A stretch of 64,000 bases of DNA from Anthoceros angustus. Lineage: Eukaryota > Plantae > Anthocerotophyta. Positions 47,589-55,000 of this stretch are shown here, in pieces. The translations under genes and the position numbers were made by a program. The notes under the pieces were generated by a model. That model had not been told where the DNA came from and searched no databases. It worked only from the letters and a program-made list of their open reading frames with translations. Positions within the stretch are counted from its first letter, which is position 1; each line of letters starts with the position of its first letter. The stretch spans positions 1,364,001 through 1,428,000 of the forward strand of contig MU008165.1 in the NCBI GenBank assembly GCA_010909165.1, in the 5' to 3' direction.

Positions 47589-48102
47589 CAACAATCACAA
47601 CGTGGGCCAGCCTGATAACGAGCTCAGACACCATCAGGAAGGCACAGTGTCCCGGATGCTGCCAGGACTGGCAGTTTCATCCAACCTGAATCCAGATCGA
47701 TATGCACCGTCAATCACACTTGTGCGAGCCGGAAGAAGACGATACAGGCTTCAACGCCTCAACAAACTTCCTGGCTAGAAACGGTTCTGGCTACAACTCA
47801 TTCACCAGCTCACCCTAAACCCTAATACTATACAACATAACAAGAGGAGGGCACAACAATCACAACGTGGGCCAGCCTGATAACGAGCTTAGACACCATC
47901 AGGAAGGCACAGAGTCCCGGATGCTGCCAGGACTGGCATTTCATCCAACCTGAATTCTCGAGATGCACTGTCACTCACACTTGTGTGAGCCAGAAAAAGA
48001 AGATACAGGCTTTAACGCCTCAACAAACTTCCTGGCTAGTAACGGTTCTGGCTACAACTCATTCACCAGCTCACCCTAAAACCTAATACTATACAACCTA
48101 AC
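47589..48102 (+). pseudogene. Two tandem 265-bp units, each holding a deleted fragment of the GH127 last exon
   Basis: gtgggccagcctgataacgagctcag..ccatcaggaaggcacag..tttcatccaacctgaat..caggctt(c/t)aacgcctc matches 22805-23045. Both units share the same internal deletion and end in ccctaaa(c/a)cctaa. Confidence 0.85.
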
Positions 48103-48151
48103 ATCCGCCACCTTGAATGTACAGTGCAGCAAGAAACATAGTATCAAAACT

Positions 48152-48872
48152 TCAAGGACATCTCCCGCCGTCAGCCATGCCTATCAGCCTTTCCTGAATC
48201 CACTGTTTGAGCGTTTCTACATTCCTATTCATGTCATCAATGGTGTCACTCTGTAATGGCATTACGATATCATGAGAGTAGCTGTCTCGAGCTTCCTCCA
48301 ATAACACCTGGAATATCTCACTCTGGATGTTGTTCTCCAGCTTCGCACCCGAGTATCCCCTGCGCACATCCAGACGAGGGTTAAACATTTCGCAGATGCA
48401 TACATAACAAAAACCCCTTAACAGACACTCCAGACAGTGCACCAACCTGCTGGTCAGACGGTCATACAGCACGGTGTTGTTGGTCTGCAGAACTACGACA
48501 AGGTCGAACCATCTTTCAGGGAACAAATCAGAGCCATGGTAATCCACGATGTTGCCTCCTCCTTGCATCCTATCCTCCAGCTCGTCGCAAACCTGAACAT
48601 GCACCCAGAGCTGCTGCCGTGACACTGTTGCCTCCTGAAAACACAGCGAACATGGTTGGCATGGCATAGATGGGCTGTCGTACCAAATCGTCGTTCACAA
48701 CGTAGCAGTCGAGCTCCTCGTCCCATCCCTCGTGCAGTTTTTTTTGGGTGATGAGCTCGCCCACGTTGACGTGATCAAAGCCTGTAGCACTGGCCAACAA
48801 CGAACAGGTAGACGTCTTGCCTGTGCCAGGAGTGCCAGTCACCAACAAGTTGGGCCGCTTCCGCTCATCCAT
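48152..48872 (-). CDS. AK6: Adenylate kinase isoenzyme 6 (AK6/Fap7/hCINAP family), 3 exons
   Basis: [15 protein letters not shown]-loop, [31 protein letters not shown]|[23 protein letters not shown]. Confidence 0.95.
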
Positions 48873-49377
48873 GCTTGCGCCCCGATAGGAAATCTAAGTT
48901 TGCGCAAACAGCAGCTCAGGAAGGAGTTCTCAAGGGCCCGCTGGATTCTTGCCCGTTGTGGCAAGCAGAATTGTAGATAAGGTAGTGCAAGACAAGACAA
49001 CATCAGCAGGAAGCAGAGTTTTCCAGTTCAGGCCGATTGGTGAGCCGACATATATAGACAAAGAAAATACGATTATTAGAGGTCGATCAAAATCGAGATC
49101 GAGATCGAGGGAGGAATTCCACTACGGGGGAGGGATCCAGCGGAACAGAGCCCACGCTGTTGGGCCAGTGAAGCTGCATCTGTTTCGATTGCCCCAACTT
49201 TCGGCAGGGGAGGCTGTTCACGGTGGTACGATCAGATTAGTGATACCATGCTGAGCTTAGACATGAGCAGGATGTTTAGCAAGGAAGCTCAGCTTCCATC
49301 TTTTTATACTGCTAGTTTGAAAGCCAGGAAAGGTCATGTGCAGCTATGCAGCCTGCGGCTATGTACATCACCACTTG

Positions 49378-50750
49378 TTATAGATCTAGACCTAGGATAC
49401 GACAGAGAGAGCACCGACCAAGATATGTCTCTTCCCCTTTTGGGGCATGCTCGATCCCCTAAGGGCAATACTCAGGGCCTAGACACTTGACAATCCCCTC
49501 GTAGAGATCCTGAAGTCTTTCCAACGCTAGGTGACAGGAATCACAACAGTGAACAGTTCCAAAGCAAGCATAAGTAGCCACGGAGCAGCATGAATTCCAT
49601 GTAATCGGCGCCATGGCCTGGTACCTTACATATTCCATGGCCAGCTGCGGCAGCAGAACAGCGGCCACACATCAACTCGCGCGGATCATAACCGTCTTCC
49701 CTGCACAATCAAGCATGATTGGTACAAGCTCGCAAACAACTCTACAACATCTTGAATCAATCAACAAGAGAAAGTGACGTCCTTTGCCCAGCACGGACCG
49801 TCCGTTTCCCGCTCCGCAGTCGCGAATACCACCAAATCTTCTTGCACTCAAAGCACAAATAATACTGATGCTTCCTCATGGCAGCTGTCACCAACTCCTC
49901 GGTTACTTCTACCTTTGCCTTGTTTGCCTTCGAGGTGGAAGGCTTCGATGAGGCCTCCATCTTGAGGGGCTCTTCTTCCGTTTGCTCCGTCCGGAGCCGC
50001 TGCCTTACCATGTCCATAACCTGCACAGCCAAATGTCTCAAGCTGAGGATCGCTTTCCATGATATGCACAACGGGTATTGCTTACTGTTTACCCGTGTAT
50101 TGCACTCGTGTCATCATTCATGTCCTACCTTTGATCTCCGCATCTCATGCTGCCCAGGATAGCTCCACAAGTGCGATGTTGCAGCGTCCTGTGAACAGAG
50201 TGGACACTCGAGGTAACGGAAGCTGATTTCGGGCCCTGGAAACCCCTCATCAAGCTTCCTCGTTGCACAGAAATAGTGCACCATGTGTCCACAGGTCAGC
50301 AGTGTGGCAGGTTCTCGTCTAATAGGTTTCACCATACATAAAAGCACACAGCTCGTCCCCGGATGTGAAGATCTTCTGACCAGAACATGGATTTGAGTGA
50401 CAGCCAGCCTGCGGAAAGTAGGAAAGGGTGTCACATCAGTTGCCCAACATGCCATAGCATTCTCACTGTCGCGAATGAAAAGAGTGCAGAAATGCGATTC
50501 GGGTTAGCAAAATCACCTCTAGACAGGGAAGGCAAGTATTATCGAGGTGAACTCCTCCACAGCGATGCCCACATTTCAAAGGCTGCAAACACGAAAACCT
50601 GAGCAGCTTTCTACAGTCGAATTCCGAGCAAACAGTCGAAGCAATGTTCAACACCTGTACAAAGTCTCTGTTTTCCCGGCACCAGGGAAGATCCGTGTAC
50701 TTGCCAATCATGGCCGAAATCTCGCCCATGATCTGTTCTACAGACATGGA
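49378..50750 (-). pseudogene. MYCBP2/Highwire/RPM-1-like RING + tandem-cysteine (RCR) E3 ligase module, disrupted
   Basis: VCSEFDC..CLQPLKCGHRCGGV..CLPCL, RING CVLC..CGHMVHYFC..GPEISFRYLECPLC, YYLCFECK/FGGIRDC, GYDPRELMCGRCS..GHGADYMEF/CCSVATYACFGTVHCCDSCH and CP*GIEHAPKGEE..LGRCSLCR. Contains two frameshifts and an in-frame TAG. Confidence 0.85.
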
Positions 50751-50832
50751 CTATGACTTTCAGCACTGGAAGAACGAACAATTCCCTCACAAAAAATGCA
50801 CTTGATTTCTGATATCTCCTTCTCATATTGCT

Positions 50833-51347
50833 TCAACATTTTGTATACATGTCCACCAGGCAGGTACCACCAAACATGTCAGGAGGCAAGCCACTGTGCG
50901 ACACATCGCAGTGCACTTTCCTGCCAGAATCCAAGACGCCGGCCAGTACGCAAGGCTGAAGGGCAGCTACAAAGACGTGGGCATCCGGCTTCACTCCTGA
51001 CCTACGCATCTCATGGTTCAGTTGTCTGGCCTCGTTAGCCTTCCCATGCTTAGCATATGCAGAGATTACGGAAGACCACATAAAGGCATTCGGTTTGGCC
51101 ACCCTGGTGAACACATCCATGGCCTCCTCTAGCCTGCCTCGACAAGCATACATGCGCCAGATATGGTTCCCCAAGTATGCATCCGACTAGTACCCGACTT
51201 AGCTGTACACAGTTTCTGCACAGTGTAAACCAGAGACTGACAGATAGCAGAGACTATCTCCGCTGAAGATTCCAGGGCTCCAACGGCCTCAGAAAGCTTC
51301 CCCTGCTGACATAACGTGCTCACGGTTACAGCTGTAACCACGCCCAT
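50833..51347 (-). pseudogene. PLS-class PPR gene fragment
   Basis: LCQQGKLSEAV, GNHIWRMYACRGRLEEAMDVF, NAFMWSSVISAYAKHGKANEA..EMRRSGVKPD, HVFVAALQPC..GRKVH and LVDMYTKC*; frameshifted with a premature stop. Confidence 0.85.
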
Positions 51348-51700: not shown

Positions 51701-51779
51701 GAAGTGATTGTTGCCGCAAGGGGTCCTGCTCCTGGCCACGACCATCGCTGATAACCCATCCCACCCACAGATAGCTGCA

Positions 51780-51900
51780 CAACGAACAAGTGGACGTGTT
51801 GCCTGTGCCGAGAGTGCCATTGGGCCGCTTCCGCCCATCCATGACTGCACCCCACGCTAGCACAGCTCAGTTTCCGCGAACAGCAGCCCAGGATGCAAGA
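51780..51900 (-). pseudogene. Degenerate 5' fragment of AK6
   Basis: MDGRKRPN-GTLGTGNTSTCSL versus [25 protein letters not shown] at 48872; the upstream aacagcagc(c/t)cagga is also shared. Confidence 0.8.
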
Positions 51901-52069: not shown

Positions 52070-55000
52070 ATGGAGGCTGGGCAGGGTCGTCAAGATGAAG
52101 ATCCTGAGCGCAAGAAGAAGAAGGAGGAGAAGGTGCGGCCGGCAGCTGCTGCTGACCTGTCGCAGAGCCGCCATTTGTGTGTTGTGTGAGGCAGGATCTT
52201 GTCTCCCTGATTGATTCAGATTCCAACATTGCCTACAGGCCAGGGAGAAGGAGTTGAAGAAGCAGAAAGCTGCCCAGAAGGCAGAAGCAGCAAAAGCTGC
52301 CAAGGCCGCACCAGATGGGTCAGGGAAGAAGAAGGATACCAAGGCCAAGCGGCCTGCTGAGGAGGTGGCTGATCCTCCCACGCCGGCTGGCCAGAAGAAG
52401 CAGCTGGCGGCTCTCATGGCCCCGTCCTACAGCCCTAAGGCCGTGGAGAGGAGGTCAGCTTTGGCATGCAGCTCTAGTGATGCAAATCGTAGCTGCTCGC
52501 CTGCAGTTGTGATTTTCATGCTTCGGTTGTTGATGCAGTTGGTATGAGTGGTGGGAGGAATCGGGATTCTTTGTGGCCGACAACACCAGTACCAAGCCGC
52601 CGTTTGTGATTGTAAGCATTGTCCTCACTTCTGCTTAGTAGGCTGTGGAAGCAAGTATGTGGCTCAGCCCAAGCATGGTTCCTACTGCAGGTAGTACCCC
52701 CGCCAAACGTTACTGGTGCCCTGCACATTGGGCATGCCTTAACAGCTGCCATCCAGGTAAGAGATGATACCTTCTGGTTTTGGAACAGAAGCAGTGTCTG
52801 AGCTCACTGGTTGGTTCACCAACTTCTTTTCGGCTCTCTTAGGATTCCGTGTCAGATGGCACAGAATGAGAGGTTACAATACGCTTTTGGGTTCCAGGCA
52901 TGGACCACGCTGGCATTGCAACTCAGGTATCAACGTTCGCTTTCCTACTGCTGGTTCCACCAGTGAAGTGTAAGGTTTCAGGGTTTAAGTTCTGTGGTTT
53001 CAGGGTTAGTGTAGGGTTTTCAGGGTTTAAGGGATGTCAGAGCCAGGTCCCTTTCCAACCATCTGCAACCTTGACTACTGCAGGTAGTTGTGGAGAAGAA
53101 GATCATGAGAGAAAGTAATCTGACAAGGCATGACATTGGGAGGGAAAAGTTCGAGGCAAAGGTATTCAGCTTTCAAACTGTGATACCCTGTGACCTGAAG
53201 AAGGAAATGTATCCTGAACTATGGTTTGTGGCAGGTATGGAATGGAAGCAAGTATGTGGCTCAGCCCAAGCATGGTTCCTACTGCAGGTAGTACCCCGCC
53301 AAACGTTACTGGTGCCCTGCACATTGGGCATGCCTTAACAGCTGCCATCCAGGTAAGAGATGATACCTTCTGGTTTTGGAACAGAAGCAGTGTCTGAGCT
53401 CACTGGTTGGTTCACCAACTTCTTTTCGGCTCTCTTAGGATTCCGTGTCAGATGGCACAGAATGAGAGGTTACAATACGCTTTTGGGTTCCAGGCATGGA
53501 CCATGCTGGCATTGCAACTCAGGTACCAACGTTCGCTTTCCACTGCTGGTTCCACCAGTGAAGTGTAAGGTTTCAGGTTTAAGTTCTGTGGTTTCAGGGT
53601 TAGTGTAGGGTTTCAGGGTTTAAGGGATGTCAGAGCCAGGTCCCTTTTCAACCATCTGCAACCTTGACTACTGCAGGTAGTTGTGGAGAAGAAGATCATG
53701 AGAGAAAGTAATCTGACAAGGCATGACATTGGGAGGGAAAAGTTTGAGGCAAAGGTATTCAGCTTTCAAACTGTGATACCCTGTGACCTGAAGAAGGAAA
53801 TGTATCCTGAACTATGGTTTGTGGCAGGTATGGAATGGAAGCAAGTATGTGGCTCAGCCCAAGCATGGTTCCTACTGCAGGTAGTACCCCCGCCAAACGT
53901 TACTGGTGCCCTGCACATTGGGCATGCCTTAACAGCTGCCATCCAGGTAAGAGATGATACCTTCTGGTTGGTGACAGAAGCAGTAGCTGAGGGCTCACTG
54001 GTTCACCAACTTCTTTTCGGCTCTCTTAGGATTCCGTGGTGAGATGGCACAGAATGAGAGGTTACAATACACTTTGGGTTCCAGGCATGGACCACGCTGG
54101 CATTGCAACTCAGGTATCAACGTTCGCTTTCCTACTGCTGGTTCCACCAGTGAAGTGTAAGGTTTCAGGGTTTAAGTTCTGTGGTTTCAGGGTTAGTGTA
54201 GGGTTTTCAGGGTTTAAGGGAAGGAGCCAGGTCCTTTTCAACCATCTGCAACCTTGACTACTGCAGGTAGTTGTGGAGAAGAAGATCATGAGAGAAAGTA
54301 ATCTGACAAGGCATGACATTGGGAGGGAAAAGTTCGAGGCAAAGGTATTCAGCTTTCAAACTGTGATACCCTGTGACCTGAAGAAGGAAATGTATCCTGA
54401 ACTATGGTTTGTGGCAGGTATGGGAATGGAAGAAGCAATATGGTGATACCATCTCGAGACAGCAACGGAAAGTGGGGGCCTCGCTTGACTGGTCTAGAGA
54501 AGTATGTCTCTTTCATATCATCTCGTCATGCATGTCATTGGTAGCTAGTGGTTTTGGAGAGTGATACGCCAGAGCATGCTGCAGTGTTTTACAATGGATG
54601 CCAAGTTGTCCAAAGCTGTAACTGAAGCCTTCGTACGCCTCTATGACGAGGGCCTGATCTACAGGTTAGTGTTGTCACCTCTAAATCAGCGCCAACTGTC
54701 ATGTCCATTTGTTTTGCGTATGCTTTCTCTGCTTGTGCCTTACAGTGGTGCACTGCAGGGATGATCGACTTGTAAACTGGGATTGTACCCTTAAGACTGC
54801 AATTTCGGATATAGAGGTACCTTGTTGCAGCCTTTTCAAACAATATTCTCCTTACTGTTCGTGACTTTCTCCCTACACGTGTATATCTTTAAGGTGGACT
54901 CGCATTTTGATCCAATGGGGCTGACCATTTTTGACCCTCCATCAGGTAGAGTATAAGGACCTGGAGAAGAGGGAAGCAATTAAGGTACCAGGTTATGATG

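Follow-up and report, generated by a model that had tools for sequence, protein, structure and literature searches.

The RING-Cys-relay (RCR) ligase is presented in reviews as an animal neuronal enzyme. The closest described relative of the locus reported here is the RCR module of human MYCBP2, a protein of about 4600 aa, represented by the PDB entries 5O6C and 6T7F. MYCBP2 esterifies threonine and serine (review: PMC9527308), and its downstream cysteine has been described with a histidine and a glutamate as partners, the three constituting a triad (PMC9527308). Two further kinds of systems provide points of comparison. The first are green-lineage genes coding for RING1-IBR-RCR proteins, examples being Selaginella XP_024530918.1, Ceratodon KC19_2G009400, Ceratopteris KP509_12G090100, Diphasiastrum O6H91_13G085400 and Chara CBR_g39123; the copy described here shares 40-57% identity with these proteins in the conserved blocks, but while those genes are intact and possess the RING1 and IBR domains, it lacks that half and is frameshifted. 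The second are the duplicated (unprocessed) chimeric pseudogenes: like these, the copy keeps its introns, is truncated at one end, has part of an unrelated gene fused to it and is transcribed, but no transposon ends, such as terminal inverted repeats, are found around it.

The locus lies in a 64-kb stretch of DNA from Anthoceros angustus (64,000 nucleotides; henceforth the window), with all the features discussed below as parts of the copy being on the minus strand. We hold with high confidence that it is a chimeric pseudogene of the unprocessed type, derived from the RING1-IBR-RCR ligase gene of the plant itself, and that it is joined to PPR sequence, bracketed by AK6 sequences, decayed and still transcribed.

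Identity of the RCR module

The minus strand of the region 49381-50836 codes, in collinear pieces, for a RING plus tandem-cysteine (TC) module, i.e. an RCR module. Conserved blocks were taken from the six-frame translation of 49300-50900, and each of them was searched separately with phmmer against the PDB sequences. For all four blocks the top solved-structure match was human MYCBP2 (5O6C/6T7F), with the chain order being preserved: the RING block aligned to 5O6C chain positions 13-65 (E 1.4e-7), the zinc-pair (CxxC) block preceding the loop of the upstream cysteine to positions 117-143 (E 0.89, weak alone), the DPREL block to positions 149-184 (E 1.8e-4) and the CCSVA...CFG...CH block to positions 185-215 (E 2.2e-5). 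An earlier note, made from the letters of the window, had matched the module to MYCBP2 motif by motif, and its three motif pairings are indeed all present on the minus strand; the span that it gave, 49378-50750, does hold the module, but the homology reaches further, to ~50836. When the pieces are strung together with an X for each break, the conceptual translation scores 293 bits against a profile of streptophyte RCR modules. Pfam is without a model for the TC domain, and the window pieces gave only sub-threshold RING matches in it; an ESM Atlas feature search with the TC piece returned nothing usable.

The order of elements shared with the human module comprises the RING, a helical linker, the CxxC pair, the GG-x3-Cys loop, DPREL and the motif CC-x6-CFG-x2-H-x-C-x2-CH. 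The relay cysteines of MYCBP2 are C4520 and C4572. The retention of both, and their equivalence to the human pair, had been claimed earlier and is upheld: the cysteines fall at chain positions 143 and 195, with the same spacing of 52 residues as C4520-C4572. The upstream one is coded by TGC at 49816-49818 within FGGIRDC, which forms the GG-x3-C loop, and it aligns to the invariant plant-family column C520. The downstream one is coded by TGC at 49564-49566, and the equivalents of its glutamate partner (in DPREL) and histidine partner (in CH) are found at 49676-49678 and 49531-49533, respectively.

The sequence features of the module are otherwise largely retained, with 62 of the 71 family-invariant residues in the aligned RCR region being present and nine lost. 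The extended G-P-x-I-[ST]-F motif of the RING reads GPEISF, yet the first CxxC of this domain is split by a one-base insertion. The zinc-ligand set of the TC domain is incomplete in that the cysteine of the K-C-x-Y stretch is gone, with all other family-invariant cysteines and histidines being present, and the last zinc pair of this domain sits beyond an in-frame TAG. Thus, in contrast to human MYCBP2, the window copy has four frame breaks and a stop and is without one zinc cysteine. It further carries a cysteine at the position equivalent to the phenylalanine F4578, a residue reportedly part of the threonine pocket of MYCBP2.

Gene model, transcription and lesions

A contig of 1415 nt from the public run X1 is identical to the window except for two removed segments, 50409-50516 and 50021-50128. 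As the contig matches the window minus these segments, the locus is transcribed and the two gaps are introns; hence, the RNA is spliced at two of the three introns of the gene model. The status of X1 as RNA was only guessed automatically, and we accept it on the splicing pattern.

The remnant of exon 1 consists of two parts. Part a (50741-50836), detected by tblastn with the homologues P0002, P0006, P0157 and P0178, codes for the KC-x-FCE block, which in intact homologues comes after the IBR; part b (50517-50744) codes for the zinc-binding pre-RING region (WC ... CGHRCGG ... CLPCLE) and displays 40-51% identity to fern, lycophyte, moss and Chara homologues. It is followed by intron 1 (50409-50516; 108 nt, GT..AG), which corresponds to the end of Selaginella exon 1, by exon 2 (50129-50408) with the RING domain, and by intron 2 (50021-50128; likewise 108 nt, GT..AG). 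Exon 3 (49799-50020) encompasses the linker, the CFEC zinc pair and, past a frameshift at ~49837, FGGIRDC with the upstream relay cysteine. Exon 4 (49381-49700) codes for the tandem-cysteine core, with the glutamate, a frameshift at ~49591, the downstream cysteine, the histidine and the TAG, and is closed by a final TAA at 49378-49380.

Between exons 3 and 4 we predict a third intron (49701-49798; 98 nt, GT..AG), which interrupts the coding sequence six residues beyond the upstream relay cysteine; the sole transcript contig still contains it. This segment had previously been counted as a frameshift, a reading that we reject since removal of the predicted intron, which has the position of Selaginella intron 3, brings the GAGNGR and EDGYDPREL blocks into one frame. 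Indeed, all three intron positions are those of the four-exon Selaginella orthologue. The intron after the upstream relay cysteine is thus common to the Selaginella gene and the window copy; the orthologue from the moss Ceratodon has about six coding exons as against the four of Selaginella.

The reading frame is disabled at five places. A frame change at ~50744, accompanied by stop codons, separates parts a and b of exon 1. At 50339-50343 the T-run 50340-50343 is a base too long, and the resulting frameshift separates the two cysteine codons of the first RING CxxC (50346-50348 and 50336-50338). The frame changes again at ~49837, between CFECKK and FGG, where codons are missing, and at ~49591, where the K-C-x-Y stretch with one invariant zinc cysteine is deleted. 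Finally, the in-frame TAG at 49459-49461 stands at a position where every homologue has a leucine. In addition to these lesions, the first ~280-315 codons are absent from the 5' end, with full-length homologues matching the window only from about residue 282-316. The earlier tally of two frameshifts and a TAG was therefore right as to the TAG but not as to the frameshifts, there being four of these and one of the supposed ones being intron 3.

In the spliced RNA the longest ORFs are of 156 and 106 aa, of which the former is without the TC domain, and none spans both the RING and the TC domain. As no reading frame joins the two domains, the window copy cannot act as a ligase. What marks an unprocessed pseudogene is found here: the parental introns are kept, the lesions are disabling, and a related copy (see below) is in frame at the RING lesion. 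We conclude that the locus is a transcribed, chimeric, front-truncated and frameshifted pseudogene; the frame breaks, the TAG, the loss of the zinc cysteine and the 5' truncation firm up what had at first been put forward as a probable case.

These conclusions require that the lesions be real, which we examined using the contigs of X1 and of a second, DNA-like run, X2. At all five lesions the X1 contig agrees with the window, and it covers 49356-50018 without a mismatch. The locus's own X2 contigs agree with the window at 50340, at 49837 and at the TAG, and one of them (49639-49917) is identical to it. The only differences between X2 and the window are deletions of a single base, or in one case two bases, in X2 at seven simple-sequence sites, namely six homopolymers and an AG repeat. 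These sites include 49404 (two bases, AG repeat), 49434, 49495, 50073, 50238 and 50791. Wherever the X1 contig covers such a site it has the window version, 50073 being in the spliced-out intron 2, where X1 is silent.

It is from such sites that one could argue for the locus being a working short RCR ligase gene, with its frameshifts and TAG being errors of a noisy assembly, the more so as the lesion at 50340-50343 itself sits in a T-run. Either X2 or the assembly must indeed contain simple-sequence errors. However, at the three coding sites that were checked (49495, 50238 and 50791) the window keeps the conserved protein reading, whereas the deletions in X2 would break conserved motifs; hence, X2 appears to be the noisier source, and it looks like a homopolymer-compressing read type. 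Further, the X2 contigs of the locus are gapless at 50341, ~49837 and the TAG, and the frameshifts at 49837 and 49591 lie outside homopolymers and entail the loss of several codons, including that of an invariant cysteine. Nor would such errors account for the missing N-terminal half, with PPR sequence in its place. X1 and X2 come from one sample, possibly from the assembled plant itself, and their agreement is not fully independent. Nevertheless, since the X1 transcript contig matches the window exactly, the lesions are not assembly errors, and we consider a working gene at this locus most unlikely.

Truncation point, neighbours and related copies

The point at which the RCR homology ends coincides with the beginning of another gene fragment. 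The region 50836-51347 (minus strand) codes for the N-terminal fragment of a PLS-type PPR gene (Pfam PPR_2, E 1.1e-12), which is itself broken and ends in LVDMYTKC, directly abutting the RCR fragment. Hundreds of contigs of the PPR family lose their match at 50830-50836, i.e. at this same point. Over 50812-50876, which contains the PPR LVDMY-x-KC motif, the contig depth jumps to more than 18,000 in X1 and more than 34,000 in X2 because of the very large PPR gene family in the organism. The RING1-IBR front that is present in intact homologues is absent at the locus, and tblastn searches with full-length homologues did not find it anywhere in the 64-kb window; no further copies of the RCR module were found in this window either.

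The PPR-RCR chimera is in turn flanked by AK6 sequences. An AK6-type adenylate kinase gene (48152-48921, minus strand; Pfam AAA_18, E 2.5e-10 and 1.6e-11) is apparently intact and is not part of the pseudogene. On the other side, at 51779-51893 (minus strand), the first exon of AK6 with the 5' end of the gene recurs in degenerate form, 75.6% identical to 48797-48921, next to the start of the divergent valyl-tRNA synthetase (ValRS) gene. The two copies of the AK6 first exon are thus ~2.98 kb apart and bracket the chimera; when we searched for inverted or direct repeats marking a transposon around it, this exon-1 duplicate was the only one found. Two sets of tandem repeats occur nearby. In the 5' part of the ValRS gene, whose HIGH-motif exon is at 52622-52801, the segment 52646-54432 consists of three head-to-tail units of ~595 bp that are 96-97% identical; this internal triplication is either genuine or a product of the assembly. 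A tandem pair of ~250-bp units, 93% identical and each with a similar short ORF, follows immediately downstream of AK6 at 47589-48103.

The sample also contains copies related to that in the window. X2 contigs 87-91% identical to exons 2 and 3 are found at about twice the depth of the window locus. The contig of this paralogue lacks one base at 50341 relative to the window and is in frame through CAVCMV, and it has the consensus aspartate after CLPCLE (CLPCLE-D-GC). We considered whether its one-base difference at 50341 might be a homopolymer read error but rejected this, the paralogue being without a homopolymer there. With a copy of this degree of identity being in frame at the RING lesion in the same sample, the existence of a source gene, which the earlier note took the pseudogene to imply, is supported. 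Another X2 contig (depth 17), lying over 50245-50365, has 31 nt in place of 119 nt of the RING exon and still reads TCGHMVHF, which suggests that the genome holds a third, differently damaged copy of the gene. Thus, there is at least one copy besides the window locus, and probably there are two.

The relationship between the locus and its paralogue bears on whether the transcribed pseudogene might have a secondary role: its RNA could regulate the parent, to which it is 87-91% identical, or it could encode a zinc-binding peptide of 106 aa from the pre-RING region. The contig of the spliced transcript has a depth like that of ordinary genes, X1 yielded no paralogue contig, and the 106-aa ORF begins with an ATG and spans the conserved pre-RING zinc region. 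However, the depth of a contig is no measure of expression, and small RNAs, translation and selective constraint lend such a role no support. In the sample of exon 3 compared between the window copy and the paralogue, 18 base changes result in 11 residue changes in 46, i.e. the differences are mostly amino-acid changing. We accordingly regard a secondary role as very unlikely.

Under the preferred reading of the locus as a decayed chimeric pseudogene, we infer the following course of events. About 1.45 kb of genomic DNA, with the last ~110 codons of exon 1 and exons 2-4, would have been copied with its introns included, and the copy joined at ~50836 behind the PPR gene fragment. The block of PPR and RCR sequence would then have come between the old first exon of AK6 and a new copy of that exon. 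Four frameshifts, a stop and the loss of one zinc-ligand cysteine would have followed. Its transcription may start from the old promoter region of AK6/ValRS.

The RING1-IBR-RCR family

To place the parent gene we examined the distribution of its homologues. With the RING piece of 70 residues as the query, an exhaustive HMMER search (E <=0.001) recovered 250 proteins, and both relay motifs are present in 65 of the 165 proteins that were examined. Members of the family occur in ferns (Pteridium, Psilotum, Adiantum and Ceratopteris), lycophytes (Selaginella and Diphasiastrum), a moss (Ceratodon) and green algae (Chara, Chlorokybus, Mesostigma, Closterium and Cymbomonas), as well as in other eukaryotes, namely the dictyostelids Polysphondylium and Cavenderia, Paulinella, Plasmodiophora, Platysulcus and a sponge. 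No member from seed plants, including angiosperms, was named in protein word-index searches that reached relatives at 30-39% identity, such that an angiosperm orthologue, characterised or otherwise, did not turn up. Some members already carry the labels 'RCR-type E3 ubiquitin transferase' (UniRef) or 'MYCBP2' (JGI), and our literature search found no papers on RCR ligases of plants, algae or protists. The original remark that these ligases are known mainly from animal neurons, with no characterised plant member known, holds as regards the plant literature. The family itself is pan-eukaryotic, old, widespread and labelled in databases, yet unstudied, and is no plant oddity.

Intact homologues from the green lineage, amoebae and Rhizaria are proteins of 580-840 aa with an RBR-type RING1-IBR front and an RCR back. 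The C-terminal 257 residues of an intact fern protein match 5O6C with E 4.6e-58 over chain positions 8-258 of 263, a match that settles the family's fold. In their N-terminal half, the proteins of the green lineage match a PDB sequence, RING1 of RNF144A, which is an RBR ligase (E 2.1e-5), and the Pfam IBR domain is detected in three of ten green-lineage members; the catalytic RING2 is absent. In the intact family the RCR module occupies the place where RING2 would be, and the IBR contains a conserved insert of ~40 residues with the motif GVPEFDRT. In comparison with human MYCBP2, the plant proteins are small, and Pfam scans of five of them revealed only RING and IBR domains, with no RCC1-like, PHR or other Pfam-recognisable domains of MYCBP2.

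We further constructed a tree of 80 RCR modules including those of animal MYCBP2. In it the window copy is placed inside a Viridiplantae clade (SH-aLRT 96) as the sister of the moss, lycophyte and fern sequences (82), with a branch length of 1.24, and animal MYCBP2 is placed elsewhere. Most of this long branch probably represents divergence of the lineage rather than decay, because the paralogue differs by only ~10% in DNA.

Given that literature reports of MYCBP2 come from animals alone, one might suspect that the sequence is not a plant gene copy but an animal or protist contaminant, or that it was recently acquired by horizontal transfer. However, the window copy clusters with land-plant and green-algal sequences, its intron positions are those of Selaginella, it is embedded among PPR, AK6 and ValRS genes on a single contig, and it has a diverged paralogue in the same sample. 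As it lies inside the green-lineage clade, apart from the animal sequences, contamination is ruled out, and from its phylogenetic placement the window copy is most readily taken as a copy of a plant gene; to a foreign origin in general, including recent transfer, we assign only a negligible probability.

By homology with MYCBP2, we infer that the parent family works in a like manner: the RING would bind E2~ubiquitin, ubiquitin would be passed to the cysteine of the loop, and it would then be relayed to the second cysteine, situated beside the histidine and glutamate. The earlier note had also raised the possibility of a co-occurrence with ciliary genes in lineages with flagellate sperm. The land-plant members named are indeed all from lineages with swimming sperm, but the family is also present in Closterium and in the dictyostelids Polysphondylium and Cavenderia. 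Closterium and the dictyostelids are not known to have flagella. Hence, the idea is weakened, and a strict link of the family to cilia is unlikely.

On a broader and tentative reading, which we consider possible but stop short of favouring, the parents would be working small ligases with an RBR front and an RCR back. In green algae and seedless plants they would esterify threonine or serine by means of a two-cysteine relay, whereas seed plants would have lost them. The locus would then be a duplicate in decay that may still affect the parent through its spliced RNA, made from the promoter region of AK6/ValRS.

As a gene copy the locus is dead; its value lies in pointing to the plant RCR family. 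Close and apparently intact relatives of the RCR module exist in a moss, lycophytes, ferns and green algae, where an RBR-type RING1-IBR precedes them. As a small enzyme, an intact member would be a tractable object for testing ester-linked ubiquitination in plants. The locus also shows that the RCR family has been duplicated and has decayed here, and how gene fragments are joined and come to be transcribed in this genome.
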